DNA of 62,073 bases, filler included, from Trichosphaerium sp. ATCC 40318 (taxonomy: Eukaryota; Protista; Tubulinea), in NCBI GenBank assembly GCA_038496445.1. It is 3 parts of 3 records of this genome, joined end to end, with 100 filler letters (N's around TTAATTAATTAA, not from the genome) between each part and the next. Parts side by side here need not be neighbours in the genome. Positions count along the whole stretch, not along the records: positions 1 to 20,724 come from JALMLS010000515.1; 2 more parts are not named here. One strand, written 5' to 3'. The notes below the pieces were generated by a model, which had not been told where the DNA came from, made no database searches, and was given only the letters and a program-made list of their open reading frames with translations. Below are positions 1 through 20,724 of this stretch, in pieces. Every line of letters starts with the position of its first letter. Within the stretch, counting starts at the first letter, position 1. The position numbers were made by a program, and so were the translations under genes.

Positions 1-2202
1 CCCTTCAGTAGATAAACATCCCAAACATGCATTGCAACATCAAGAGGAAGAGTTTTTGAAAAAATTGTGAGCACCCTATAAAAACCGCGGTAAGTCAAAA
101 CACAATGGTGCAGCAAGTCTGCTTAAAGGCCGAAAAAAATGTGAACAAAAAAAAAGAAAAAAATTAAGTGTACCAATCCAGTAAATACAATTCAGGAGGG
201 ACACCCAATTTTGTGAGGTGGGCACTTAGTTTAGGAAGGAAAAAATCAAGCATGGTTTGAAATACACGGTAATACGCATGTATCTAAGACAGAAGGTTAA
301 CAACAGCTGGCGCAAATACTACAAAGGTTACGCACTTTTTCCACTTGCATACTGTAAAAAGCAAGATGCATCCGCGTATTCAACATATTGGCAAGAACAA
401 TAAATGCATTACACTCACTCACATTCAATAAGAGTATTGCAGCTAAATACGACATGCCTTGAACCTAACATTGTAAGAAAAAAAGAAAAAGAATAGCAAT
501 AATTTTTTTACAAAGTTGCTTCAGCACATAGCCTAAAAGGTTATTATTGAACGCACATATCCAATATCAGGTCTAAAGCATACATATGCCTCTAAAACAT
601 TACGCAATATAGGATGGTAAGGGCCATCTTCATTAAAAAATGATAAAGCTGGAAAAGTTCGTGGTAAATCAAGTGGAATTAATAATACTGTATCTTCCTT
701 CCCAACACCAACTTTTTCCTCTTTCATTTCTCTTCGTGCCTGGATCAGAAAGTAAATATTGTAATACAGACCACTCATTTCCAGTATAGTTATTATACTC
801 ACCCTTTCGGCACCCTTTAAGTGAATAGTGTACAATTCAGGTGTTATATTCAATTCATTTGAAGCCATTTTTACCCAAATATCACCACGCATATTTGAAG
901 GTACACCATGTAACCACAAGTCTTTTGTTCGCTCTGCATCTTTTCTACATGGTTTAAGAAATAGCTCTTAAAACACTGGAGTACAAAAAAAAGAAACCAA
1001 ACAACAATAAAAGATAAGCGAACCTGTGCCATGTTGGTAAATGTTGTTTCCACCTCTCTATATTTTGGCCTATTTGATTTTCCCTTCTCCTCTTCTTCTC
1101 TTCTCGTGTAAGTCGCTGTCTTTCTTCTTTTGTACCTAACCGTCGGTCACATAAAAGACACCAAAACGTTTTCAAAAAAACCAATCAACTCACGTGATTT
1201 TCTCATCATCTCCTCATATTGACGTAAATGACGCTCCTCTTCTGTCTTATCCTTTGGTGGCAACATTCTAAGAGTAAATTAAGATAAAATAAGCGCAATA
1301 AAGCGAAATTTCAATATATTATTATTTGTTTCCACTTTGTAATGTGTATACGCACCTTGGCCTTGTCGTAGATATATGTAATTCATTTATATTTTTTTGA
1401 AAAATCTGGAGGTAACATAAGACCACATAACGACCTAATGTATCTCCGTACGTTTTAAATCTTGTAAAAAATCTACCAACATTTTGTTCAGGCTCAAAAT
1501 CACTTGCTAGAGAACTCTTATCTCGTCGTTTATCTAAACCAATCGTTGGTAATGATAGTGTTAGTTAATGGAATATTACTAACCTTGTTCATCAGCGTTT
1601 GCGTCAGCATTAGCGTCATCTATTGGTGTTTCTACTGGAGGTGCACTTGAACTTCTGCCTGCACGGGACCGTCCCGAACCGACATCTGCTTCACTACCGC
1701 TAGGACGCACAGGTGTATTAAGCGTGCCTGTCGAACTACGCCTTCTTTCTTTGACAGGCTCCTGTACTTCCTTATTCTCATCTGTTGGCGCGTCTGGCGC
1801 TTCGATTGGCGTTGTGGTGGCCTCTGCCGAATTTACGCCCTGTTCATTGACTGAAACACCTGAAGTCTAATAAAAATAAGTTGCAGGCGTCCAATACTTA
1901 TTGTAGCGTACGAGAGATCTATTGTCGGTTTCTTCGAGATCAATATTATCACTAACACCCGCTTCTTCTCCTGATTCAGTTTGCTGATCATTTGTATCGT
2001 CTGTATTATTATCTTCACCCGTTTCATCTCGTGCTTCAGCTGTTAAAGAGTCGATTGCAGTGCGATCGTCTGAGGCACTTTTTGAGTCGCTCACGGCTAC
2101 TTTGGTTTGGGTTTGTTCCTCTTCCGTACCCTTGTCACCAGTTTCAGCTGTAGCATTCTGTAATGCTGTTTCGTTTTCGAAAGCACCCTCTACAGATGTC
2201 AT
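1..2202 (-). CDS. TBC-domain Rab GTPase-activating protein (TBC1D12/14-like), multi-exon, runs off the left edge
   Basis: Exon translations LWLHGVPSNMRGDIW, IPLDLPRTFPALSFF, LRNVLEAYVCFRPDIGYV/QGMSYLAAILLLNVSE contain the TBC IxxDxxR and YxQ fingers; acidic low-complexity N-terminus starting MTSVEG. Confidence 0.9.
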
Positions 2203-2417
2203 CAAGGTGGTAGGGTATCTTTTTTGAAAATAACTGACATTTACAGTTAACAAAAAGCACTACTTCCATTACAACAGGAGCAGAGTCTAAACATCTTTCT
2301 TTGACAGCCTGTGCTTAAAAGAGCAGAAAAAGAACACCAGTATAATTATAAAACCACTCAACACAGCCTATACGCGTGCAACTACTTAAAAAAGATCACA
2401 CATTCATATTTATCAAA

Positions 2418-2941
2418 ATGGCTGACGCAGATGGTCCTAATAAGAAAAACTTCCACCGTGCTGTCTCAGACCCTAAATTCACGCCAAAACTTTACAATAT
2501 ACCAGCAAACGCGCCAAGAGGCTTGGGTAAACTGACTGCCATTAAATGGTTTCAAGTTGCGAGGCTTGTTTTATACGTATCGGCACCATTGGTAGCGTGG
2601 AGAATATCAGAGGAGCTAAGAACTGCTTCATTTGCCCCACAACTCATAGAATACGTACGCAAACTAATTTTTAGCGCCAACACGTATTAATACAATCGAT
2701 TTACGCTCTTTCTTACGAATTCCGGTTGTTGGTTGACTAATCTTATTCACAGTTCGGCTGGCTCATACCCATAGAAAAACAAATGGAATACACCATAACT
2801 CCACCAGAAAAACAACAAATTTTATTTGAGCGCACTCAAGAACGCCTTGCGGCAGCAGATGATGGCACTTATCTCACTGGCGACCCTGAAGCAGCACAAA
2901 GGAAGATATTTTGGTCTGACATAATGTTAAAAAAGAAATAA
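2418..2941 (+). CDS. Small mitochondrial-type protein, PET100-like COX assembly factor (2 exons)
   Basis: Spliced product MADADGPNKK...KWFQVARLVLYVSAPLVAWRISEE...PPEKQQILFERTQERL resembles the PET100 pattern (E-x-x-R-x-x-x-Y-x-x-x-P TM segment, then PPE and a charged helix); GT-AG intron after codon Y at ~2655. Confidence 0.5.
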
Positions 2942-3097
2942 TTTTTCTTTCTCACAACGCTCTAACGAAACCAAACAAACACCCAAAAAGCAAAGATAAA
3001 ACCCTGTGTTTTTTTTGTAAAATGTAATTTTTTTGTACAAGCATTTTGATGTCCATACAACGCAAAGCGTTATTATACTAATAAAACCCATAAGGAA

Positions 3098-4763
3098 TCA
3101 AAAAAATAGCAAGTCGTTCGTTCCTCCAACTGTAGCAGTTGCTTTCTGAAACAAAGAGTTAGAGAGTGATCAACAAGTTTAAAAATAAAGGAAACAAGAC
3201 GTAAGACGTCTTTCTACTTACTGGTGCACCAGCGCTGAACGCATCAAATGGGTTAGCTGGTTGAGTTGGTTGAGTTGGTTGTGCTTGTTGTGCTGGAGCC
3301 ATACCGCCTTGGAAAGGTGTGAAATTCAACTGACCGCCCTGTGGTTGACCTATTTCATTTTGAGATTTTGCTAGAAATGTACTATTCAAACAAACCTTGG
3401 AACTGTTGCTGTTGTGGCGGTTGCCCATACTGGTTAAATCCCGCGAATGGGTTACTTGCAACCAAAGAAGGGGATTGATTGTATTGTACTGGTTGCGGTT
3501 GATTGAATTGCAGTGGCTGGTTGTACTGTTGTGTAGCAGCTTGCTGTTTAGGTACAAATGGATCAAAACCTAAGTCCAACAAATTGCCTGTTGGTTGTGC
3601 AGCAGGTTGGGCTTGTTGAACTTGTTGAACTTGCTGAGTTTGCTGTGGTTTCTGTTGAGCTTGCGCTGGACGAGTGTTGGCAACTCTAGTTTGCTACAAT
3701 TATGTAAGACAATGTAAAAAACAAAAATCTTAAACGAAGAAATCTGGGAGTAATGTCTTTTCTCCACTCTGCACCAATAAATATGTCACTATTTCTTATT
3801 CCCTCTAAGATACAATGTGATGTAACTCACCAAAGCAAATAATTACCAAGTTCATTGGTGCTGAGCACAGAAAAAGAACAAAACTTCCAAAATCAACCAG
3901 TTTTGTTATTTGTAAAAAAGAATAATAAAATTCTCCAGACTTGTTTGACGTACGCTACTACCACTTGAACCAGGAGGCGGAGGTAGGAATGGAACCTATG
4001 ATATTATAAGGTTTATAAACATGCCAGTTAAATCACGTACAGCGACATCCGGTTGCGTGTTTTTCTTTGGAAGCGGCTTGAGTGGCTCAAGTTTTGTTTT
4101 TTTGCCCTTCTTCGATTTTTTCTTTTTCGCCTCGTGCTTGCGACGTTTGTCATCGTGGGTACCTTTAACCGACGCCATGATATCTATAAATATGAGATAA
4201 GCTTGCGTGTACGTCAAACGAATCCTGTGCGATTACCTTCAACCCATGACTGGCGTTCTTGAGGGGAATAAGGGAAAAGTACAAAGGTTCTTGTTCTACA
4301 ATACAAGCGAATTTCACCTGTCGCAGTTAAGGATTATTGGTTTAACACAAGTTATTAGGTGTAAGGGTGCATAAGGATACGTCCTTGTTCTTCAACTGAC
4401 ACAGTCGGACTGTTCAAGGTAATGTGAATGCGCAACCAATATTTACGGGACTTTTCCTTCTTACAAACGAGCATAATGTCGTTAAACAGGAAGAAGTGCC
4501 TTGGTTTCTGTTTCTTGTCCTTATCACTCCACATTTGCATGGTACCTTCGCTAGTTGCGTGTGAGGATAATCAGAGTGTATGATCGCTATGTAGAAACAA
4601 AGACTCAACGTACCGCACAAAAAACCTTCCATCCGTCACGAGGTCCTAAAATCTACGTTACCATTTTATAATTAACTAAATAACGCACTGGTGGCTTTGG
4701 TGTTAGAACGTCATGTATTTCCCACACGCGAGAGGTGCTATATAATTCTGGAGATGTAGCCAT
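3098..4763 (-). CDS. PH-domain protein with a Q/P-rich tail carrying endocytic motifs
   Basis: EGTMQMWSDKDKKQKPRHFFLFNDIMLVCKK is a PH strand pattern; the tail has LLDL, FDPF, two NPF motifs and ends NDLLFF*. Confidence 0.7.
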
Positions 4764-4978
4764 AGCGTATAGTTACCACTTATGATTCTCCGGCCGCTTT
4801 GTAAATTGGTGAATAACTACTTTCCTTTGACTGCTTTTTCACCGCATTTTTCCAAAATAAAAACAAGCAACCACCAATGTTAAGACTAAGATTTACAGTA
4901 TACTTATGTACAATTTATTTAAGCTTATTGGCTATATTGACACTTTAATAGCCAAAATGACTTTTTGAAGAAGTCTCA

Positions 4979-5891
4979 TTATGACTCTTGTTTTATCTTC
5001 ATCCGCTTAGCTTCTCTGGTATCTTCTGCGTCAAGTTTCTAAAGAGAATGTCAATAAATCTTTGAATTTGATGTTGGTAGGCGTGCCCTCTTGCGTAATG
5101 GAAACTACAAGAATGTTAGATGAGAAGAGTATATTGAGCGACGTACTTTGGCTTCAAGTGTAGAAAAAATACTATTAAGTTGGCTGTCATGTACCCGTGA
5201 TGGCCTGCCCTCAGTCTTTATCGAGTTTGTCTCTTCATCAGTGAACTATGTAGTTGTTATGTACTGAAGGGCGGTTAAAGCGTTAATACTTTGCCCTTTC
5301 GCCAACTGTACTTGGTGAGCGGATCAAATGTAGTGAAAGACTTCATTGCTTTGAAAGCCTCATGGGCATGAAATGAGCTACAATGCTAAATTTGGGTTAT
5401 AACTGTTCATTTTTGTTGCTTATGTACGTACAACACGTGACAATAGTACATCTCTCACAGTAGGAGATTGATAAAAGTCTGCGTTAATGAGGTAGAAGGT
5501 CGATACAGGTTTTGTCGTTGCTCGATCTTGGCGGTACTCTTTACGTAGAACAGTTAAATTACCTCCTTCTGGAAGCTTCTCTGCGTGGTGAATAGCGTAT
5601 TGCAGCCCTTTCATATTCCTTTTAAGGTATTTAATACATCAGAATGATATTGATTGGCGTTACGTACAACAGCAAGTCCTCCTGGTGTTCAAATTCATGG
5701 CCTTGCATTTGTAACGCGGCATTATCGCATGACTTGTCAAAAAACGGCGAATATGCGAAATAATGCATTGCATGCTCTGGTTCGGGTATACCGAACTGTG
5801 CGACCCACATACCATGCGAGAATCTTTGCTGTGATAAATCCGCCTCTGGATACGGTATTTCAGACTCTCTATTGTTGCCGTCTTGTTCCAT
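4979..5891 (-). CDS. MED6: Mediator complex subunit 6
   Basis: MHYFAYSPFFDKSCDNAALQMQ and FYLINADFYQSPTVRDVLLSRV match MED6 conserved blocks (YF...PFYD.TCNN...MQ; YY.I.G..YQAP....V..SR). Confidence 0.85.
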
Positions 5892-6029
5892 TTGTTGTAC
5901 GATAAAAAAGAATTTGCTGCCGTGCTTCCTTCTCCGTGTTTGTTTTGTTGAATTGATTCAAAGCCTAACTTAAAATACAGGTTTAAAACCGTTCAAGCAA
6001 CAACACCTTCTACTTGTTACACTACAAAA

Positions 6030-6603
6030 ATGGCTGATGTTGTAGGTACTGCTTGGCTATTGGAAATCGCTATAATTCGCCCCTTATGCATTTGTAGTAC
6101 CACGAAACTTTCGTTTGTTAGAAGAACTCGAAAGAGGTGAAAAGGGACTCGATGGCAACGGATCTATCTCTTATGGTCTAGAAGACGGAGCGGACATGTC
6201 ATTGTCTTCCTGGCAATGTACTATCATTGGACCACCTGGCGTATGCGGCAGATAATAACGCTTTATACATAACCTTTTGCTAGACACGCCACGAAGGTCG
6301 CATTTATAGTTGTAAAGTACACTGTGGCGATAATTACCCTAATCAGCCTCCTACAGTCCGTTTTTACTCCAAGATCAACATGAAGTGCGTCAACGCTTCA
6401 AATGGGGTATGTAGCGCTTGAATACGCTCCATTATTTAAATACCACTAACGCTTAGCAGCAGGTAGTAAATTTAAACGTCTTGTCAAACTGGAAACGTGA
6501 GTACACCTTGGAGACAATTCTCAAGGAACTACATCGCGAAATGGCAGCTCCTCACAACAAAAACCTTTCCCAACCACCAGAAGGAGCAAACTACGGATAT
6601 TAA
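6030..6603 (+). CDS. UBE2V: Ubiquitin-conjugating enzyme E2 variant (UEV1/MMS2)
   Basis: Spliced [17 protein letters not shown]...ISYGL...[38 protein letters not shown]...QPPEG is the diagnostic UEV sequence. Confidence 0.95.
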
Positions 6604-6872
6604 AATGACATGCACCCAACAAAACACACCACGCGAGTGTCAGCGCGTTCCTACATCACTGTGTAATGCTGTAAAAAAAAATCAAAAAAGTTTTGACAAT
6701 TATACTGTTTGCAAGTTCAATTTCGTTGTGGCGATATACGTTATGCAATACGCATGAATGTACGCTGTTTGACTGTCCAGAAATGGCCGAAGTTTTTTCG
6801 CGTCAAAAACCGGGAAATGTTAAACTTGAGTCAATAGTATTCTCTAATCGTTACTTAGGAAGAAGCATCGCA

Positions 6873-7813
6873 ATGAGCTACACTGGGGTATGATAATACT
6901 TGTAACGCTATATGCAGGCGTAATTTCTCAACTTATTCCAAGGAAATCGTGATCGATGGAAAGGACCATTTGATGGGCCGTTTGGCTTCTATTGTTGCCA
7001 AGCAATTGCTCAACGGCAAAAGAGTTGTCGTCTTGCGTTGCGAAAAGATTATAATATCTGGACATTGTACGCCCTTCATTTTACGTTGTATCCACTTCTA
7101 ACGCATTATTTAGTCTTGAGAAACAGAAGTACGTGCTAGATGATTGTTTTTAAGCTGATCTATTCCTTCTAGTCAAGTTTCAACACTGGTTGAACAAAAC
7201 CAGAAACTACAACCCAGTAAATGGTCCTAGACACTACCGTGCTCCATCAAAGATCTTTTACAGATGTGTACGCGGTATGGTCCCACACAGAATCCCTCGT
7301 GGAGGAAACGCCCTTGGCAGACTCCGTGTCTTCGAAGGTGTACCTTACGAATTTCAAAAGTCTAAAAGAGCCCTTGTCCCTGATGCTCACCGGTACAATA
7401 TCATCAAAATTACTCAACTACGATATAAACGCGTTATTTTCACCATTGCGCCTTTTTCTTTTAAATCGTATTTTGCAATTCAAGTAGAAATCTCACTTTT
7501 GTATTTTAGCGTAAACCGCCTTCGTCCTGGTCGTAAATGGACCATTCTCGGCGAACTCGCCAATACTATTGGCTGGAAATACCAAGGTGTCGTCAAGGCT
7601 CTCGAAGAAAAGAGGCAAGTCCGTGGCAAACAATTCTTTCTCCGCAAGCAAGCTCTCCAGAAACTACGCAAGGAAGCAGTTGTCGCTGTTGAAGCCAAGA
7701 TGGGTGATGAAGTCAAACAACTCGAAGAATTTGGTGTTCCTCTCGTCAGTGTATGGCCAGGCCGTCTCGAAAAAGAAGTCCTCAAGCGACCAAGAGCTGA
7801 GAAATCGCAATAA
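6873..7813 (+). CDS. RPL13A: 60S ribosomal protein L13a (uL13)
   Basis: [70 protein letters not shown]; four introns including a 15-nt exon. Confidence 0.97.
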
Positions 7814-9044: not shown

Positions 9045-9244
9045 GTATGGATTGATTACTGTGTCCTCTCTAAGTGTTTTTTTAAAGCCCAATATTTACA
9101 TTTTATTTCTTTTTTTTTTTTATTAAGTCAGTTTATTGACACGACGGTACATTCCGCACATGTTTACACATGAAGTACAGCAAAAACTAAGGGTTACGAT
9201 CCCTTCGCCGTTAAACGATTAAATAGGTGGACCACACCTGCTAG

Positions 9245-12200
9245 CTAGAGCAAAGGCATGTATAAGTAGGATTTGTCTTTTGGGTTTTTAAGTCTATTTT
9301 CTACCAGAGCCATTTCTTTTTCAATCAGTGATCGGTGTTTAGTGAAAGAGGGGAGCCCTTCTGAGTGTCGGGCTGCATTATAAGCTATCCAAGTCCGTTT
9401 TATAAGGATTGCCAGGTAAAGTTGGTTAATTGGGCTAAGAGAAGATAGGGAATGCAAGGTGTCAGAACAGAATTGAAAGTTAAGTCTAAGTTTTTTAGCA
9501 ATGATGGTAGTAACATAGTAAGGAGGAGATTTGAAGAGGATCCACATAATATGGTCTTGTTCAGCGTCATAGGCGCATCGAAGTGTGCGTAGGATTGCTC
9601 TAAGTAGGTAATCTCTGAGTATAGGGAATATTTTGAAGTGGTTGCCCGTGTGTAGAACTTTGAAGGTGTTTTCCAGTTTGAGGCCATACTTGATTAGCAT
9701 CTCTTTGATACGAGCAGTTGGTTCGCCTTTATTAGCAGTAGAAAGTTTATAAAGTTGTTTGGCGCTTCTCGGTTTAGGGCCTACAGCATCTATAACTTCA
9801 TCTAAAGAGCAGTTTATGAATTTGGTGTTGAGGGATATCCAGGCGTTTCTACAAATTGTGAAATGGTAAGAGGCATTGGCTTTAGACCACATGCCAAAGT
9901 GATTATGCCATTGATTCCATAAGCGGTAAAATGGTAGGTGGTTGGAGTGGTAGTTGTACAGAAAATTTTCCCAGTGAGAAGCCAGCAAAGCTGTGTTAAA
10001 AGTAGCAGGGTTGATCAAATCAAAGCCACCTTGAGATGTGCTATTGAAGATTCGCTTAGGTGAGCGTCGAAATTGTTTGCCAAAAAAAAGGTAAGTAGTA
10101 GCAAGCTTGATAGAGTTAATTTGCTGGGGAGAAGCCTTGATAAGTCTAAACAGATATGTGAAGAGGGAGATGGAGTAAGAAACGTATATAGTTTTTTTGG
10201 AGTAGAGTGTTCTTGTGAGATTGGCCCACCTTGTGGATTTGTTTTGTAGATTATTAACAACATTCCAAATTGTATTTTCTAAACCGATATTGTTTTTGTT
10301 ATAAGTGAAGGTGGTACCAAGATAAGTGGCTGAGCTAGTAGACTTGTAAGGAGACAAAAGCGGTTTGTTGGTTATGGACATGCACTTGTCAGGATGGGCT
10401 ATAAGACCTGTAGTGGATTGAGCTGCTTTAAAGACTTTGGTCATTTCAGTAATATCTTTGACAGAAGTGGCAAGAACAACAACGTCATCGGCAAAAGCAA
10501 GATAAGTAACCTTAGTTTTGTGTAACATGACACCATCCAACTTGCGGTTAAGCAGGTTGAGGAGTGGTTGAAGAGTGATAACAAATAGGGTAGGTGAAAG
10601 AGGGTCTCCTTGTTTGACTCCACGGGATACCAGAAACGGCTTAGACAGGGTGCGATTAACATAGACTTTGAAAAAAGTGTTAGAAAGGCAAGCTTTGATA
10701 AGGTTAAGAAAGGGCTTAGGCACTTTGAAGTGTTTGAGTGTGCGAAAGATGGCTTTATGATCAACTGAGTCAAATGCTTTTTGAAAATCAATAAAGGAGA
10801 AGTTGTAAATGTTGTTACCATCACCACAATCAATTTCTTGGAAGAAAGCCTCCTCCAAAGTAATGATATTTGTGGTAATGTCCCGTCCAGGTACAAATCC
10901 GCTCTGTGTTTTAGGAATGATGTGTTTGAGGATACAGCGTAACCTGTTGTTGATCAAGTGAGTGAGAATTTTATAGTCAGTATTGAGAAGAGCAATAGGG
11001 CGGCGATTACGAGGATCCAGAACATCACCTTTGTTTTTGTAAAGAGAGATAAATATTCCTTTTTTGAATGCTGCCGGAATGGAGACTGAGGAAGGGTTGC
11101 TAGTGTATGTGTTGTTAATACACCTGAGGAGGGAAGAAGAGAGTTTTGGAAACATTTTGTAGACAAAGGATGGTAATCCATCTGGACCTGGAGCAGAAGA
11201 ACCATTGAGCTTTGTGAGGACCTTATTCATTTCATCTTTGGTAAATGGTGAACTCATGTTTTTGAGTGCAGATTTGGGGACTTTGCGAAGCAGTGGTTTA
11301 AGAGAAGAGCTTTTAAGTATAAGGCCATGTTTGGTAGCATTAGTTTTAGATTTTTTGTAAAGGTTTTCATAGAACGTACGCAGCACTTCAAGGATGTCTT
11401 TTGTAGAGTGAACTATCTCATTTTTAGAATTTTTCATAGCAGTAACGATTTGATTGTGACGTTTGCTGGCTAATCTAGCTGAAAGTAACGGACCAGGCAC
11501 TTCATCAACAGTAAAGTCTTGAAGCCCTGCCTTGAACATTTGAACAGATTTGTAGCCTCGCTCCCAGTAAGACAGCTTGGCACATAAATGAATATGTTCA
11601 GCAGTACCTGGTGAAGTGTTACTAAGTTGCTGTTTAACTTGATAGCGATTATGATTAATGATTTTGACCAGATCTAATTGGTTTTTTTTAAGAGAGTGAG
11701 TAAGAGTACGCTTTATGCTACACCATTGGTGAAGGTTATTTGCTAAATGTGTGTTGGTGGATTGGACAGTGGTTTTTAAAGTTTCAGAGTATTTCATCCA
11801 GTTTTGGAGCCGCCATAAGCCTTTGCTAAGTTTGTTTTTGTGAGAAGAGAACTTGGAAACAAGGAAGCAGTGGTCATAGTTTGATAGTGGAGGATCAACT
11901 TCGAATTTAGTGCAGGATTGATGCCAAAATTTACTAGCAAAAATATAATCGATTTTAGACTGAGAAGACTTACCACGGTAACAGGTAGAGAGAAGGTTAT
12001 TGTCAATATCAGTTAGACTGTTAGAGAGAAGAATTGTACCTAGTTCAGACAAGCCCGTAAGCCTAGAATCTGAACTGCTACAGTGTGGGGTGACATGTTT
12101 GACTGAAAAAATTGTATTGAAATCACCTAATAGAAAATCGACGTTGCTAACGTTTTGATTAAGAGAGGAAAAAAAAGCAGGGCGTTCTTTAGACTGAGAG

Positions 12201-12568
12201 GGAGCGTATACAACACAGATGTTGAAGGAAACAGCATTTTTGGTGACTGTGGCTGTGACATACCTGCCGGATTGGGAGAGCACAATATTTGAGATGTTGA
12301 GTGACTTGCGGAGTATCAGTGCTGTACCTGAATGCCTTGAGGAAGGTTGAGGAGACCAAGCGACCTTGTAAGTAGAAGAGGAGACAAAAAAGGGTATAGA
12401 GTTGGTTCTACGTGAGTTAGAGGAGTTTGAAATAGGTTTCCAATGTGTTTCAGAGACAGCGACAAGGTCAAGATTGTGAAAAGACATTTTTTGAAGCAAG
12501 AAGTTCCATTTATTGACAGTAGTAAGTCCGTTAGCGTTCCAAGAGCCTATAGCTAAGTTGAGAGTCAT
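9245..12568 (-). CDS. LINE ORF2: APE-type endonuclease plus reverse transcriptase
   Basis: SWNANGL, VSETH, VYAP, LGDFN, SKIDYIF, YDH (EN); SAPGPDGL, RPIALLNTDYKI, QSGFVPGR, DFQKAFDSV, GVKQGDPLSP, FADD, YLG (RT); 1107 aa uninterrupted. Confidence 0.97.
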   Translation of the reverse strand: MTLNLAIGSWNANGLTTVNKWNFLLQKMSFHNLDLVAVSETHWKPISNSSNSRRTNSIPFFVSSSTYKVAWSPQPSSRHSGTALILRKSLNISNIVLSQSGRYVTATVTKNAVSFNICVVYAPSQSKERPAFFSSLNQNVSNVDFLLGDFNTIFSVKHVTPHCSSSDSRLTGLSELGTILLSNSLTDIDNNLLSTCYRGKSSQSKIDYIFASKFWHQSCTKFEVDPPLSNYDHCFLVSKFSSHKNKLSKGLWRLQNWMKYSETLKTTVQSTNTHLANNLHQWCSIKRTLTHSLKKNQLDLVKIINHNRYQVKQQLSNTSPGTAEHIHLCAKLSYWERGYKSVQMFKAGLQDFTVDEVPGPLLSARLASKRHNQIVTAMKNSKNEIVHSTKDILEVLRTFYENLYKKSKTNATKHGLILKSSSLKPLLRKVPKSALKNMSSPFTKDEMNKVLTKLNGSSAPGPDGLPSFVYKMFPKLSSSLLRCINNTYTSNPSSVSIPAAFKKGIFISLYKNKGDVLDPRNRRPIALLNTDYKILTHLINNRLRCILKHIIPKTQSGFVPGRDITTNIITLEEAFFQEIDCGDGNNIYNFSFIDFQKAFDSVDHKAIFRTLKHFKVPKPFLNLIKACLSNTFFKVYVNRTLSKPFLVSRGVKQGDPLSPTLFVITLQPLLNLLNRKLDGVMLHKTKVTYLAFADDVVVLATSVKDITEMTKVFKAAQSTTGLIAHPDKCMSITNKPLLSPYKSTSSATYLGTTFTYNKNNIGLENTIWNVVNNLQNKSTRWANLTRTLYSKKTIYVSYSISLFTYLFRLIKASPQQINSIKLATTYLFFGKQFRRSPKRIFNSTSQGGFDLINPATFNTALLASHWENFLYNYHSNHLPFYRLWNQWHNHFGMWSKANASYHFTICRNAWISLNTKFINCSLDEVIDAVGPKPRSAKQLYKLSTANKGEPTARIKEMLIKYGLKLENTFKVLHTGNHFKIFPILRDYLLRAILRTLRCAYDAEQDHIMWILFKSPPYYVTTIIAKKLRLNFQFCSDTLHSLSSLSPINQLYLAILIKRTWIAYNAARHSEGLPSFTKHRSLIEKEMALVENRLKNPKDKSYLYMPLL

Positions 12569-13398
12569 AGGTTGGAGTCGCTAGAGGGTAGTTTAACAAT
12601 TTTGCTGGGTGAGTCAATGAGAAAAGGCTCGTAAGGGTCTACTGTATCTACATGAGTTACTTTACGACGTTTGGCGGGAGGAGAGGAAGTACTTGCGTTA
12701 TTATCAGTGCCGTCAGAATATTCTGCTTTGCGAGAGGTTTTTTCGAAAAAGGTGATGGTAATGGAGTCATTACCCGAAGGTATAACAACTCTACCAGGGC
12801 CAGTGAGTTTAGGACATACAGCAAGGAGATCGACATAAATGGTTTCACCAGGGATATTGCGGATGGATACACGGTGAATAGAGCCAACATGTGCGTGGTA
12901 CGACATTTCTAAGAACTTTTGGAAAAGTTGGGGGGTAATGTTAACCGGGATACCATGGAATACAATAGTTTGCGCTGGAGGAGCTTTGGCGGAGGAAGTG
13001 TAAGCGATACCATCATGAAAACATCTGAAAATTTGGGATGGGTATGAGATACGGATATTAGCAAACGACTTTAAAATCCACCCTTCTGAGGTGTTTTTAA
13101 TGGTCGTGAGCCCTTGGTCGATGGAGTTGAGAAATTCATCAGGATCTTGAAATAATGGCGTGATAGCGGTACGTAGGAACGTAGGAAAGTCAGGAGCTAA
13201 GTTTTTGTTGACTCTAACAGCTGTAAAGGTGAGATTTGGGTCATTGAGGTTATCCGCCGTAACAGCGGTTCCATTAGGCAAGTTAGGGGTACCAAGAGCA
13301 ATAATAGTGACGATAATGGTGGTTTGGGCAGTATTAGCTAGCAGGGCGGACCAACCTTGTAGTACTGTTTCATTCGGATTAGTCTGTGGAGCCGCCAT
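12565..13398 (-). CDS. LINE ORF1 protein
   Basis: Lies upstream of ORF2; RRM-like TIVFHGIPVNITPQLFQKFL segment; SV40-like NLS PPAKRRKV; its stop overlaps the ORF2 start (ATGA). Confidence 0.8.
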   Translation of the reverse strand: MAAPQTNPNETVLQGWSALLANTAQTTIIVTIIALGTPNLPNGTAVTADNLNDPNLTFTAVRVNKNLAPDFPTFLRTAITPLFQDPDEFLNSIDQGLTTIKNTSEGWILKSFANIRISYPSQIFRCFHDGIAYTSSAKAPPAQTIVFHGIPVNITPQLFQKFLEMSYHAHVGSIHRVSIRNIPGETIYVDLLAVCPKLTGPGRVVIPSGNDSITITFFEKTSRKAEYSDGTDNNASTSSPPAKRRKVTHVDTVDPYEPFLIDSPSKIVKLPSSDSNL

Positions 13399-13803
13399 GG
13401 CAGAGACGTTGCGATGATAGAGTAGTTAAGGAAGGACCTTGGTTGATGGTAAACAGCTTGGTAAAAGTAAAGGATGGTGTAAAGCTAAAGTAGGATTTTG
13501 CAAATTAGATACGAAAGTTGACTTCGCTCAATTTTGTTGGTAAATCTAGTTATTAATAAAGTGAGTCTTTTAAAAGATAGCTTAACCCTAAAATAACGTA
13601 GTGCAATTTCAAGTCAAAGCCTTGCTACTGCATTCACGTGCCATGAATTAGCACGTGTGTGCTGTTACATAGTTATAAACGTTCTAAATCTTTGTGCGGG
13701 GAAGAAAAACACTGGGTGTTACGGAGCGAAAGACAAAAGTCAGAGGACCAAGGTTTTATTCATAACCAAATTGTTAACATAAACAATGAGGATGTATCAC
13801 ATA

Positions 13804-16800
13804 TCAATTGGTACTACTAGTTGAAAGGCGAGCGTGCAAGCTTTGAATTTCAGTTTGTAAACTTTGATTCTCGGCCTCCAGTTTTTTAATCTTCTTCTTC
13901 AAATCAGGTTCTTTGCGGCTGTCAAAAGCACCTAAATCAAGCGAATGTTGCCTAACATCGTTAGCTCATAAATGAGCACATAGTGTACTTACTGTTGAGA
14001 CCTGAGAGGTACGTCATTACCAAATAAAATGACATACAACTTTGGCGCAAAGATAACAGCAAGAGTCACTAAAAGAACAAGATTTAGTAATTACGTCCAA
14101 AGTTGTTTGTGATGTACCTGTTGTACTTATCCAAATTGCAACTGAGAAAAGAATACTCACACTCCTGAGAAGTGATAGTGACGTGATGGCGTATCCCAAA
14201 CCAACAAGTATCAGCGCCCATACAAACATATCATAAATAGCTGCTCCCAACCAACGTGATTCATTATAAATACTTGGAGCCTTACGGACTGCAAACGCAA
14301 GATATGAACCAACAATCAATATTATTCCCTACCACAATTGTTTAATAGAATGAAGTACCAATAGCTTGCGTACATTATAGACAATAGTGATAATCAGAAA
14401 TACGCTAGCATATCTACTCTTGCAGTGCGCAACTTGAAAGCTGCTATCGCCTGGATCTGTTGTGTGCCTGAGCCGGTTTGGAGACATTACTGACCACATA
14501 ATTAAAGCAACCTTAACAAGTTTAAGGATAAACAAAAGTAACAAAAGCGAAACAAACAAAAGCAAGGCATAAGGATACTATCTGACCGCTTATTAATGCA
14601 GCTGTTAGTTTAACAACATCTATTAGAGGCACTGCAACAACATGAGTTGGACATTTCTTGAGGGTGTTAAATATTCTGTGAATTCTGTAAGTTTTCGCCA
14701 CAAGCGGCCTTAAAGTTGTGGTTAGTAGTTCAAACATATTGTAGTTGTACTGAAATAAAGCGTACGCCATAGTAGTAATAAATCCCATCAATGGAATCCA
14801 TATCCGCAACTCACAGATAACATCAGATATAGGAGCACTCCTTTATTGAGTTAGTACAACTTCATAGTACTACTGCCATACCAAACAATTGTGCCACAAT
14901 ACAACAAATATATACCAACAAGGATAACCACAAGTAGTTCTGGTGTTGATGCCGTCAATATTGGTGAAGATTTCCTATTCAAACGTTAGTTAGTGTTGTT
15001 GAGAAAATACGATTTTAATGACATACCAAAAGAATAATACAACAGCGACTACAGACAAAGTTAAAAGCAATCCAAAGCACCCAACTGATATTCCTATTAT
15101 AGTTGCAGCATCACTCCACCTCCAAACCCTTAAGGTTTGTTCTCTTTCCACCATTTGAATTGACACGGAACTATTTGAAAATACAAATGCTGGGGAAAAT
15201 GGAAAAGTACCACTGTATTGGCGCTCAACAATCATGGTTCCATTAAATATAACACTTGACCCTTTAGAGAATTTCATCAAAGGGAATATGTCAAACAGGT
15301 GAACGCATGTTGAAGTAGGTATTGATATGAACAGTGTACCCACTAAACAAAAATAAATCAGGGCTGTAAAATACAAACTTACTAATAGTAATATTTGATT
15401 CAGTGATGGCCAAATAAGACTTGCCCAGTGTAATATTGAACCTGCTTTGAGAGCTAATAAGAATATCTGTAGAGTTTAGGCTTACACGTCCCTACATATT
15501 TGTAAGCAAGTTAACATGACCATACACTTACGTCAACAACTAATGTCGAGTTTTGAAGCATTTCCAAAAAACTGTCTTGCCCATGAACAAACATCTCTGG
15601 TGCAATTCTCAAAGTGCCATATTCGAGGGTAACAATAGTAGTATGAGGGATATATATTGTGCTTGATATTAAACTATGTATGCTAATTGATCCTATTTTT
15701 ACAAGGTTAATAACGTGATCTTTCAACTAAGAAATATACCTCTGTTTTCTATTCCTATGGAATCTATTATCATGCCAGAAACTGAGGAGGTGCAATTCCG
15801 TTTGAGTATGAGCTGTTTCTCGAGGTTAGAAGACGTTCCCTAAATTTAGAAGGATTAAGAAGTGCATGACTTTGTTTCAACAGCAGTACATAAATTCGTC
15901 CACTTTCAGCATTAAAACTCGAATACACTTCCAACACTCCATCCTTCGAAAAATTCAGAAAGCCGTTTTCAATTACCAGATGTTCGACAGTGTCTGATTG
16001 CTCTTTGATCCAATTTGAAAACAGTGGCATACGCAATGTGCTAAATACATTACCTGAACAATATGTCATTAAAACAGCTACAAATAGAAAAGGTACCTCC
16101 AGTAATCCGTGGGAACAAGTCATCAAAATCATCTGGATTGGTATTTTCGAACACGTTGTTTGATACTGTAGTGTTTTTTAAATATCCGTTAGTTATTATA
16201 TCATTTTCAAGACCACTATCGATTGAGATAGCTAGATTCTATCAGCGTTTATTATGGTATATGGTAGTACCTGATCCAGTATTGTTCTTGAATAAGTTAT
16301 TTTCTACTGTAACATTACTTGTTATCAGTCTTAGTGCACCACCTCTATCATCAGCGGTGTTATTACTACAACTACATAAGCACTTTACAGTCATTTATTT
16401 TACCTGAAAGTGCACTCTTGCATTGAGGAACTGGTACTATTCCAGCTGAATAATCCACCACCATCATGAGCAATGTTATTACTACAACTGCATCAGCACT
16501 ATTCATTCATTTTTTATACACTCAATTATACCTGAAAGTGCAGCGTTGCACTAAGAAACTGCCCTCCCCGCTGTATAATCCACCACCAAAATCAGCGATG
16601 TTATTACTACATCTGCATCAGCGCTTTATAGTCATATATTTTACCTGAAAGTGCACTCTTGCATTGAGATGTCCCCGTTGTTGTGTAATCCACCACCATC
16701 ATCATGAGCGATGTTATTACTACATCAGCATCAGCACTTTACATTCATTTATTTTACCTGAAAGTGCAGTCTTGCATTGAGAAACTGGTACTATGCTGAC

Positions 16801-19800
16801 TGGATAATCCACCACCATCATCAGCGGTGTTATTACTACAACTACATAAGCACTATTCATTCGTTTTTTCTACACTCATTTATTTACCTGAAAGTGCAGA
16901 CTTGCATTGAGAAACTGCAATTCCAACTGTATAATCCACCACCATAATGGGCGATGTTATTACTACAACTGTGTCAGCACTTTACAGTCATTTATTTTAC
17001 CTGAAAGTGCAGTCTTCCATTAAGAAACTACCATCCTTACTGTATAATCCACCACCATCATTAGCAATGTTATTACTACAACTGCATCAGCGCTTTACAA
17101 TCTTTTATTTTACCTGAAAGTGGAGTCTTCCATTGAGAAACTGGTACTATGCTGACTGAATAATCCACCACCATCATCAGCGGTGTTATTACTACAACTG
17201 CATCAACACTATTCATTCATTTTTTATACGCTCATTTATTTACCTGAAAGTGCAGTTGTGGATTGAGTAACTGTCTTTGTAGCTGTATAATCCACCACCA
17301 AAATCAGCAGTGTTATTACTACATCTGCATCAGCGCTTTACAATCTTTTATTTTACCTGAAAGTGCAGTCTTCCATTGAGAAACTGGTACTATGCTGACT
17401 GGATAATCCACCACCATCATCAGCGGTGTTATTACTACAACTACATAAGCACTATTCATTCGTTTTTTCTACACTCATTTATTTACCTGAAAGTGCAGTT
17501 GTGGATTGAGTAACTGTCTTTGTAGCTGTATAATCCACCACCAAAATCAGCAGTGTTATTACTACATCTGCATCAGCGCTTTACATTCATTTATTTTACC
17601 TGAAAGTGCAGTCTTCCATTAAGAAACTACCATCCTTACTGTATAATCCACCACCATCATTAGCAATGTTATTACTACAACTGCATCAGCGCTTTACAAT
17701 CTTTTATTTTACCTGAAAGTGCAGTCTTCCATTGAGAAACTGGTACTATGCTGACTGAATAATCCACCACCATCATCATGAGCGATGTTATTACTACAAC
17801 TGCATCAGCGCTTTACAGTCATTTATTTTACCTGAAAGTGCACTCTTGCATTGAGATGTCCCCGTTGTTGTGTAATCCACCACCATCATCATGAGCGATG
17901 TTATTACTACAACTGCATAAGCGCTTTACAGTCATTTATTTTACCTGAAAGTGCAGTCTTCCATTGAGAACCTGGTATTGTACCAACTGTATAATCCACC
18001 ACCATCATGAGCGATGTTATTACTACATCAGCATCAGCGCCTTATAGTCATCAATTTTACCTGAAAGTGCAGTCTTCCATTGAGGAACTGGTACTATGCT
18101 GACTGGATAATCCACCACCAAAATCAGCGGTGTTATTACTACAACTGCATCAACACTATTCATTCATTTTTTATACGCTCATTTATTTACCTGAAAGTGC
18201 AGTTGTGGATTGAGTAACTGTCTTTGTAGCTGTATAATCCACCACCAAAATCAGCAGTGTCTTTGTAGCTGTATAATCCATCACCAGCGATGTTATTACT
18301 ACATCTGCATCAGTGCTTTACATTCATTTATTTTACCTGAAAGTGCACTCTTCCATTGAGAACCTGGTATTGTACCAACTGAATAATCCACCACCATCAT
18401 CATGAGCGATGTTATTACTACATCAGCATCAGCGCCTTATAGTCATCAATTTTACCTGAAAGTGCAGTCTTCCATTGAGAAACTGGTACTATGCCAACTG
18501 AATAATCCACCACCATCATCAGCGGTGTTATTACTACAACTACATAAGCACTATTCATTCGTTTTTTCTACACTCATTTATTTACCTGAAAGTGCAGTCT
18601 TGCATTGAGGAACTGGTACTTTCCACACTTAATAATCCACCACCATCATCACCAGCAATGTTATTACTACAACTGCATCAGCACTATTCATTCGTTTTTT
18701 ATACACTCATTTATTTACCTAAAAGTGCAGCGGCGCACTGAGAAACTGCTAAACCCGCTGTATAATCCACCACCACCATAATTAGCGGTGTTATTACTAC
18801 AACTGCATCAGCGCTTTACATTCATTTATTTTACCTGAAAGTGCAGTCTTCCATTGAGATGTCCCCGTCGTTGTGTAATCCACCACCATAACGAGCAATG
18901 TTATTACTACATCTGCATTAGCACTATACACTCATTTATTTACCTGAAAGTGCAGCGGTGCACTGAGAAACTGCCATCCCCGCTGTATAATCCACCACCA
19001 TCATAATGAGCGGTGTTATTACTACATCAACATCAGCGCTTTACAGCCATTTATTTTACCTGAAAGTGCACTCTTGTATTAAGAAACTGCCATCCTTACT
19101 GTATAATCCACCACCAAAATAAGCGGTGTTATTACTACAACTGCATCAGCGCTTTACAATCTTGTTTTTACCTGAAAGTGCACTCTTGTATTGAGATGTC
19201 CCCATACACAAGCCATACTGCCCCACCATTGGATGTAACTTGGTTGTTTGTAAATTTAGAACCTGAAATGTGTACTGTTGATTCGTTGCTTTGAGATGAT
19301 TCAATTGCTAGAACAATTAGCTCTAAAAAAACACGTGGTAAACCTACCGATTCCTCCACCTAAATGTGCTGAACCAAATAAAAAGCTGCTATTCTTTACA
19401 ATCACATTCACTGTTCCTTCGCCATAAATTTGCCCTTTAACAGTCAGCAACAATTTGTTTTGAAAGCAGCACCTTTGTACACGCGTCCATAGTTGAAGAC
19501 GGAACTTTCAACAACTAGTGATGAGTTGAAAATGCTGACACTTGCTAAGTTTTTTTCAAAATGTACTCTAAAGAGTTATCAGTAAAACTACAAGTTCAAT
19601 TTCCCTACCCTTTCAATGCCATAGAGCCTCCTTGATTTTGTATTATACTTGTAGTACGCTTGCAGTCGAAGCCGCACTTGTTTCGACGAAAAACACAGTC
19701 CCTACGATAGTACCAGTTAGAATAGTAATGGATACTAGAGGATGAAAAAGAAGGTCTTGACGAGATACATGTGAACGAAATAACAGTAACTACTCAAAAA

Positions 19801-20724
19801 ACAATGCGTGGGTTTGCACTACAAATTAGGGCGCATGTTCTATTTCTTTGAAATTCGTTCTTTTGGTGGCCTTTTGTACGACATTTTTGCAAAGAAAACA
19901 GCGTATTTTTAGTCAATCATGGCTAATCAATATCGCGAAAAGTAGTGCAAACCCCGTTAGCTATTCAACTAAAAAAACTGCTTTGCTGTACGCCTGTGTC
20001 CCTTGCTATAAGTTCTTTAAATATTTAAAAACGTAGCTGTTCCTAAAATCGGCAAACCGAACATCAAAAAGCGTAAGCGAAGGGTTACCCTGGTAGTCCT
20101 AAGAAACTTACAAGAGCAGGCTTAGGTTTTCTACGAATAAAGCCACGTGTTTGGTAAAAAAAAAACTCAATTACTTTGCAGTTTTTGCTGTACCTAACGT
20201 CAACGTGCCCACCTCGTATTGTAATTACCGAAGCGATATCACTCCCATCGTTACACTAAAGCGGAGTGTTAATATTATTAAAGTCAGCGTTAATTGTATG
20301 TTGTACGTTAAACCAAGGACACTCCATCTGTGAAATTATAAGGTTTGAGAGTGTAATGTTAACACCAAAAGTCTGAATAAAGTAATTCGAATGTCCACCG
20401 TCAATAATAGTTTCGAAATCACCGCTTCCTATTACGCGTTTTAATACAAAAGCTGGGTACTTTAGTGCGTTGAAGCAAAACCATAAACGTACCTTCAATC
20501 GTAATTTTGGACAGATTCAGAACACTCCACGTGAGGTTGGTATTGTTGTAGCCTTGTACAAAACTATTTAATGATTGAAAACTGTTCTGTCTTACCCACA
20601 TACACTCCAGCACCAAGCTTTATCACGTCATCAGATATCGCCTCAGAAAACAAGGCATATCTCAAGGATTTACATGGATTCAAACGACTACAGTCGCCAT
20701 CATCTATACCTACAATAGTACCGT
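13804..20724 (-). CDS. Family C (GABA-B/Grl-like) 7TM receptor with a Pmp/pectate-lyase-like beta-helix ectodomain; 5' end lies in the gap
   Basis: 7TM_3 motifs PILTASTPELLVVILVG, CELRIWIPLMGF, PLVAKTYRIHRIF, LAFAVRKAPSIYNESRWLGAAIY; C-terminal coiled coil LKKKIKKLEAENQSLQTEIQSL; N-terminal GIDDGDCSRLNPCKSLRYAL...DVIKLGAGVY and many FxNN...GG(A/G)L repeats. Linking the exons at 19840-20724 to this gene is inferred. Confidence 0.82.
16366..19171 (-). repeat. Tandem array of 24 near-identical introns and 23 cassette exons (unit ~110-146 bp)
   Basis: Donor motif (+ strand TACCTGAAAGTG) recurs 24 times from ~16403 to ~19171; introns of ~38 or ~50-52 nt end in GCAGTTGTAG-like acceptors; exons of 72-81 nt (one 108 nt) are all phase 2-2. 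Confidence 0.95.

Follow-up and report, generated by a model that had tools for sequence, protein, structure and literature searches.

The window, the whole stretch of DNA that was analysed (62,073 nucleotides of Trichosphaerium sp. ATCC 40318, assembly GCA_038496445.1, three genomic parts joined by filler), carries in its first part (positions 1 to 20,724, from JALMLS010000515.1) a minus-strand receptor gene in which an array of small exons encodes part of the ectodomain. Our hand-built model of this gene has 45 exons and 44 GT-AG introns and keeps a single open frame of 1510 codons from the edge of the sequence piece to the stop codon at 13804, with the domain order Pmp-type beta-helix, stalk, class C (7tm_3) seven-transmembrane (7TM) domain and C-terminal tail (Table 1). 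Exon boundaries in 19172..20552 were modelled by hand, mostly without RNA support. Pfam and other database searches were run exon by exon, and the joined spliced model was used in local blastp and phmmer/tree comparisons. The piece starts inside an intron, and the signal-peptide exon probably lies outside it; in two related genes on an ENA metagenome contig, L001, a hydrophobic leader exon precedes the exon that matches the first one in our piece. Pfam recognizes 7tm_3 on a single exon of 70 amino acids (aa) at 14119-14328 with E 8e-8 (32.6 bits, where the cut-off for the whole domain is 33.5); a second exon gives E 0.09. No Venus flytrap (ANF/BMP) domain was found in the exon-by-exon Pfam searches, where ectodomain exons match Chlam_PMP or Beta_helix or nothing. 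By its 7tm_3 domain the array belongs to a class C (family 3) G protein-coupled receptor (GPCR), one without the canonical ANF/BMP ligand domain. A first-pass annotation of this DNA had already tied the array to a class C 7TM domain, and the open 45-exon frame and the Pfam match bear that link out.

Table 1. Features of the receptor gene and its surroundings, in positions of the window
Feature	Position	Strand	Basis or remark
First exon in piece; N-terminal cap, contains Cys	20596..20709	-	gene model; tblastn to both L001 genes, E 6e-8 and 7e-9
Seven non-repetitive exons, divergent Pmp-like rungs	19172..20552	-	Chlam_PMP E 0.002 on 19174-19305; paralogue-like contigs spliced at 19308
Array, 24 GT-AG introns and 23 phase 2-2 exons	16366..19171	-	one predicted beta-helix coil per exon; model residues 261-860
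Six exons, last rungs and membrane-proximal stalk	15383..16365	-	Beta_helix E 0.013 on 16272-16364; contig splice joints
Seven exons, stalk end and class C (7tm_3) seven-helix domain	13993..15342	-	Pfam; contigs; exon layout as in L001
Last exon, cytoplasmic tail with coiled-coil-like heptad stretch (by eye); stop 13804-13806	13804..13951	-	tails alike in P0002 and P0035
RPL13A	about 6870-7813	+	117-nt intron
Ubiquitin-conjugating-variant-like gene	about 6030-6600	+	by eye
MED6 gene	5631-5891	-	ordinary neighbour, short introns
RabGAP-TBC gene	533-1184	-	ordinary neighbour, short introns

Parsed on the minus strand from 19171 down to 16366, the array resolves exactly into 24 donors and 24 acceptors, the first donor at 19171 and the last acceptor at 16366. 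Its introns are near-identical and come in two sizes (17 of 37/38 nt and seven of 50/52 nt), most with a branch-like CTGAT at -15, and intron and coil together make a repeat unit of about 113-130 bp. The 23 exons are 72, 75, 78 or 81 nt long, plus a single exon of 108 nt (18191-18298, minus strand) that holds an in-frame internal duplication of 39 nt; all are multiples of three, all are phase 2-2, and none of the 23 has a stop in the coding frame, against 0/23 stop-free at frame offset 0. Twenty of them are distinct (the identical pairs are 11=21, 13=18 and 14=16), and about seven unit types can be told apart, which follow one another as ABCBDDEFDECDAFDFDAGDCBD. Because all 24 introns have lengths that are not multiples of three and carry an in-frame stop if retained, retention would truncate the protein before the membrane, possibly leaving a secreted rod of variable length or a substrate for decay. 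The 24 introns and 23 symmetric, stop-free exons that had been described for this array proved exact on re-parsing, and the peptides quoted with them were correct.

The structural meaning of the exon was read from P0002, the best full-length relative and the homologue on which the beta-helix fold was predicted. Residues 240-640 of P0002 are predicted with a mean pLDDT of 80.5 as three strands per 24-28 residues. The P0002 coils align one-to-one with the array exons (best pair 12/24 identical), so that, on this predicted fold, each array exon is one coil of a Pmp-type beta-helix, with the intron inside the third strand and the FxxN and GG[A/G][I/L] motifs recurring once per three-stranded coil; the earlier proposal of one rung per exon agrees with both the fold and the alignment. 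If inward and outward residues alternate as usual, the inward or structural positions would comprise N2, A4, GGGL, C, F and the hydrophobic residues of the strands; variation falls in the loop that precedes GGGL, in the residue that follows L, in the next loop and at strand positions pointing outward. A search of the ESM Atlas with P0002 yielded no usable match.

Transcript evidence comes from contigs of four public runs (two samples), which we took as RNA from their splice joints: they behave as RNA because they skip all ten of the modelled introns between 14400 and 16300. The joining of array to 7TM exons, looked for in these contigs, is seen at all ten introns between the two, in this gene or its paralogues. 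Identity to the gene's 7TM region is 100% in some contigs and 90-97% in others, a split that suggests, from sequence, several expressed paralogues or alleles. Loose contig ends at both ends of the array carry TTTCAG|TAATAAC spliced junctions flanked by other rung sequences, and a related intron occupies the array's rung-junction position in one contig; together these suggest paralogues that share the unit of intron and rung. Splicing at rung positions is observed in paralogue-like transcripts, from which we infer constitutive splicing of the window gene's own array.

Relatives of the gene place the array in an evolutionary order. The 7TM exon finds 35 proteins with phmmer, and the nine that were scanned all carry a full 7tm_3 domain. 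P0002, from Trichosphaerium sp. (Amoebozoa), joins a Beta_helix match (E 3e-39) to 7tm_3 (E 8e-46) as the window gene does, and P0035 is similar; eight other scanned matches carry ANF domains. L001 holds two tandem beta-helix GPCR genes (1097-5195, complete, and 5400-7171, truncated where the contig ends), in which no exon array was seen. The exon layout of the 7TM domain is the same as in the window gene, and about six rungs are encoded in one intron-free exon. Because a related gene encodes its rungs in this way, the exon-per-rung layout is derived. In the tree, the window gene groups by its 7TM domain with L001, P0002 and P0035 at support 99/98, and rung number varies widely among homologues. 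On a further contig, L002, an intronless gene (309-3251) adjoining an EMP70 gene encodes a 980-aa Pmp-repeat plus 7tm_3 protein, P0069. The 7TM domain of P0069 lies on a long branch outside the window gene's group, and the combination of Pmp repeats with 7tm_3 may therefore have arisen more than once. Homologue searches with the 7TM exon, P0002 and P0035 returned no Grl proteins, those with P0002 and P0035 giving mostly bacterial-type Pmp-repeat proteins and ANF-type receptors, and metagenome contigs scanned with the exact junction pattern and the 7TM exon gave no match.

Within the array, the units have recombined. The closest relatives of a unit are rarely its neighbours and similarity is independent of position (Mantel r 0.0), and in the four-gamete test 175 of the 378 informative site pairs are incompatible, incompatibility rising with distance (p 0.004). 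The loop alleles DF, HDD and HD are each paired with two or three centre types, 17 loop/centre combinations persist, and the long form of the intron goes with exons of type D (p 3e-5); Mantel tests of introns against exons gave no information. Unequal crossover with short conversion tracts between constant blocks fits this mosaic, and the four-gamete failures and the loop alleles shared across centre types support the unequal crossover or gene conversion that the first-pass annotation had proposed.

We consider it probable that the window gene is an expressed class C GPCR of amoebozoan type, resembling GrlP/Q/R of Dictyostelium, whose right-handed Pmp-type beta-helix array was built by tandem duplication of intron plus coil, with recombination, and is spliced in series. 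An intron would have come to sit at the F-S|N-N position of one coil in this lineage, and the unit of intron and one coil would then have duplicated in tandem to 23 copies. As the unit would be exactly one coil, in frame, an in-register crossover would always yield a foldable rod. Repeated unequal crossover and short conversion tracts between the constant blocks (the intron, NN-x-A, GGGL and CTF) would homogenise introns and flanks, and would bring the loop ahead of GGGL into new combinations with the strand and loop that follow. If all array exons are normally spliced in order, they would add about 24 coils, which at 4.8 A each come to roughly 11-12 nm. Genomic differences between alleles and paralogues, and not a splicing switch, would be the source of diversity, and the varied outer face would probably bind a polymeric ligand (a glycan or surface protein) and signal through the 7TM domain. 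Some points weigh against this account. Recurrent mutation also produces four-gamete failures; perfect repeats of up to 138 nt mean that the unit order is possibly mis-assembled; the array is nearly uncovered by contigs, as is the unique 5' part, a coverage hole that by itself proves nothing; and Foldseek gave the P0002 fold no match among solved structures at E<=0.001, its top matches being mostly beta-helix tailspikes, epimerases and lyases.

The introns differ at a p-distance of 0.14 (0.18 without splice signals), and exon centres, at the nucleotide level, at 0.39 in the loop and 0.24 in the strand. Silent-site divergence (pS) is 0.07 in the exon flanks and 0.26 in the centres, where replacement divergence (pN) is 0.33. 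The exon centres are older or less converted, and this accounts for much of the reversed conservation of introns and exons. The observation that introns are more alike than exon centres is therefore upheld by measurement, but it does not demonstrate diversifying selection, since silent sites in the centres diverge too and spidroin genes offer a precedent (PMC9779670).

That silent and replacement sites in the centres diverge to about the same extent is what might be expected if the array merely lengthens the rod, either carrying the N-terminal cap past the cell coat or presenting glycosylated low-affinity repeats, with rung differences left as near-neutral relics of uneven homogenisation. We take this to be a real possibility, though we lean against it. 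The wide variation in rung number among homologues speaks for it, as does the N-N-T sequon present in 10 of the 23 rungs, where a T/I column switches the N-glycosylation sequon on or off. Strong conversion, however, would be expected to collapse a pure spacer to one type, yet the 17 loop/centre combinations remain.

A variable recognition surface is plausible. It seems unlikely that the same shuffling operates in a diversified recognition receptor, in which diversifying or balancing selection would keep the loops different for the recognition of prey, pathogen or self, after the manner of the WD40 repeats of fungal het-d/het-e or the ROCO exons of brown algae. Variation is concentrated in the loops and outward strand positions, every indel keeps the frame, about seven types persist despite homogenised flanks, and several expressed paralogue-like sequences carry different rungs; still, the loops of any beta-helix tolerate neutral change. 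Omega is ~0.96 overall, ~0.45 at inward positions, which are constrained, and ~1.1 at outward positions. Against silent sites alone, which number only about 14, omega is 0.96 overall and 1.01 on the putative groove face (p 0.59-0.69; bootstrap pN/pS 0.69-3.55), and on that face pN is 0.42 and pS 0.19. A pooled baseline of introns and silent sites raises the ratio to 1.84 (p 0.011), but introns are themselves constrained and converted and the columns were picked after the data had been seen. An excess of non-synonymous change across the array exons had been anticipated; measured against silent sites, omega stays near 1 with no significant excess. We are correspondingly doubtful of the broader proposal of an amoebozoan class C GPCR family that uses one-coil exons as recombining modules under diversifying selection, a fast-evolving repertoire for recognizing bacteria, parasites or kin that is possibly extended by exon skipping. 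If true, it would be a third independent solution, after brown-algal leucine-rich repeat (LRR)/TPR exons and fungal WD40 repeats, on a new scaffold wired to a GPCR.

Diversification by splicing, whether by Dscam-like mutually exclusive choice or by free exon skipping, is improbable. Any donor of the array could be joined in frame to any acceptor, brown-algal ROCO genes are reported to splice their LRR exons alternatively (PMC11378527), and exon skipping would not show in short contigs. Against this, adjacent rungs are spliced together in the paralogue-like contigs, which is not mutually exclusive choice; introns of 37-52 nt are normal for the gene and its neighbours and give no steric exclusion; exon skipping that preserves the frame is found largely in animals (PMC6142364); and the three identical exon pairs add nothing to a repertoire of choices. 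A search for docking/selector pairing gave a sole candidate, a 12-nt perfect complement between 19707-19718, at the 3' end of the gene's longest intron, and seven type D exons; by shuffling its P is 0.12-0.32, and we rejected it as being at chance level. No orphan, inverted or donor cassette and no unit copy was found elsewhere within 1-20724, and the gene, open from the piece edge to the stop codon, is not an incomplete germline gene of the kind known for agnathan variable lymphocyte receptors (VLR). With rungs joined in paralogue-like transcripts, no docking above chance, no cassettes in 20.7 kb and no significant amino-acid excess, the Dscam/VLR framing of the array given in the first-pass annotation finds no support. 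An assembly artefact, or a non-coding minisatellite in a pseudogene, is very improbable: public contigs leave the array almost uncovered and short-read assemblies of such repeats are unreliable (PMC12222747), but there are 20 distinct stop-free exons with indels in multiples of three, the frame continues into unique exons on both sides, matching spliced junctions occur in independent runs, and an assembly error could alter the number or order of units but not create the unit.

The longest intron (19702-20193, minus strand) measures 492 nt, the gene's other introns 37-67 nt. Inside it, two 13-nt arms at 19810-19822 and 19942-19954 form a perfect inverted repeat, which may mark a small inserted element; the intron has no Rfam match and folds no better than its shuffles (z -0.44). 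At 20320-20345 (minus strand) a shifted frame resembles the Pmp motif, possibly through a one-base error or another splice; the modelled frame is open regardless. Just downstream of the receptor gene and on the same strand lies an apparently intact non-LTR retrotransposon (9108-13400, minus strand), whose 277-aa ORF1 (12565-13398, no Pfam match) overlaps a 1107-aa ORF2 with an N-terminus that looks endonuclease-like by eye and an RVT_1 match (E 4e-39). It has a poly(A) tail near 9120 and no convincing target-site duplication. Beyond it are the genes listed in Table 1, among which RPL13A has a best match (46%) that clusters with a Vannella sequence and, like the Trichosphaerium relatives of the receptor, points to an amoebozoan host. 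Searches for Rfam families and tRNAs gave no match.

The joining of Pmp repeats to a family 3 GPCR is already known from GrlP/Q/R of Dictyostelium (PMC1885808), family 3 GPCRs of unknown function in which a long Pmp-homologous N-terminus replaces the ANF/BMP domain (PMC1885808, PMC10445921). Compared by description, they share with the window gene a Pmp N-terminus on a family 3 7TM domain in an amoebozoan, at 1095-1604 aa versus about 1530 here, but we found no report of an exon-per-coil array or of near-identical repeats in them. Every element of the array thus has its precedent, but in the open-access literature we found no description of a Pmp-type beta-helix, or of an amoebozoan GPCR, with one exon per coil.

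The closest genomic parallels lie in other scaffolds. The ROCO LRR and NB-ARC-TPR arrays of Ectocarpus encode one solenoid repeat per exon in shuffled, 72-nt, phase 2 exons (PMC3341825, PMC11378527). The ROCO genes share with the window gene one repeat per exon, recombination among modules and a candidate role in recognition, but here the module is a beta-helix coil in a 7TM ectodomain, the introns are tiny and homogenised, and there are no inactivated or inverted intronic cassettes. The vertebrate glycoprotein-hormone receptors LHCGR and FSHR are class A receptors with ancient, diverged LRRs and unrelated introns, whereas the window gene encodes a class C receptor with a beta-helix. They too, as cited in PMC11378527, build the ectodomain of a GPCR from serially spliced phase-2 exons that each hold one repeat. 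In Podospora, het-d and het-e carry near-identical WD40 repeats with concerted evolution, variable positions and reshuffling by recombination (PMC12222747); unlike the window array, these encode the beta-propeller of an intracellular NLR, with proven selection and allele specificity. The MaSp2 and flagelliform spidroin genes of Argiope have iterated, homogenised small introns of two types that bound protein repeats (PMC9779670), but these are structural silks whose coding repeats are also homogeneous and alternate regularly, whereas the window array is a mosaic. Drosophila Dscam1 and agnathan VLR likewise array interchangeable repeat modules in a receptor ectodomain, but in the window gene there is no sign of docking sites, of mutually exclusive splicing, of donor cassettes on either side or of an incomplete germline copy.

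Among these systems, the window gene is one in which the origin of an array has been caught, with relatives that lack these introns and 24 introns that descend from one. How free-living amoebae might vary the receptors on their surface could be tested concretely in this gene, which also gives a clue to the GrlP/Q/R class, so far unstudied. Should selection be demonstrated and the order of rungs vary between strains, it would be a tractable protist model of recognition; otherwise it would be a case of intron multiplication by tandem duplication.

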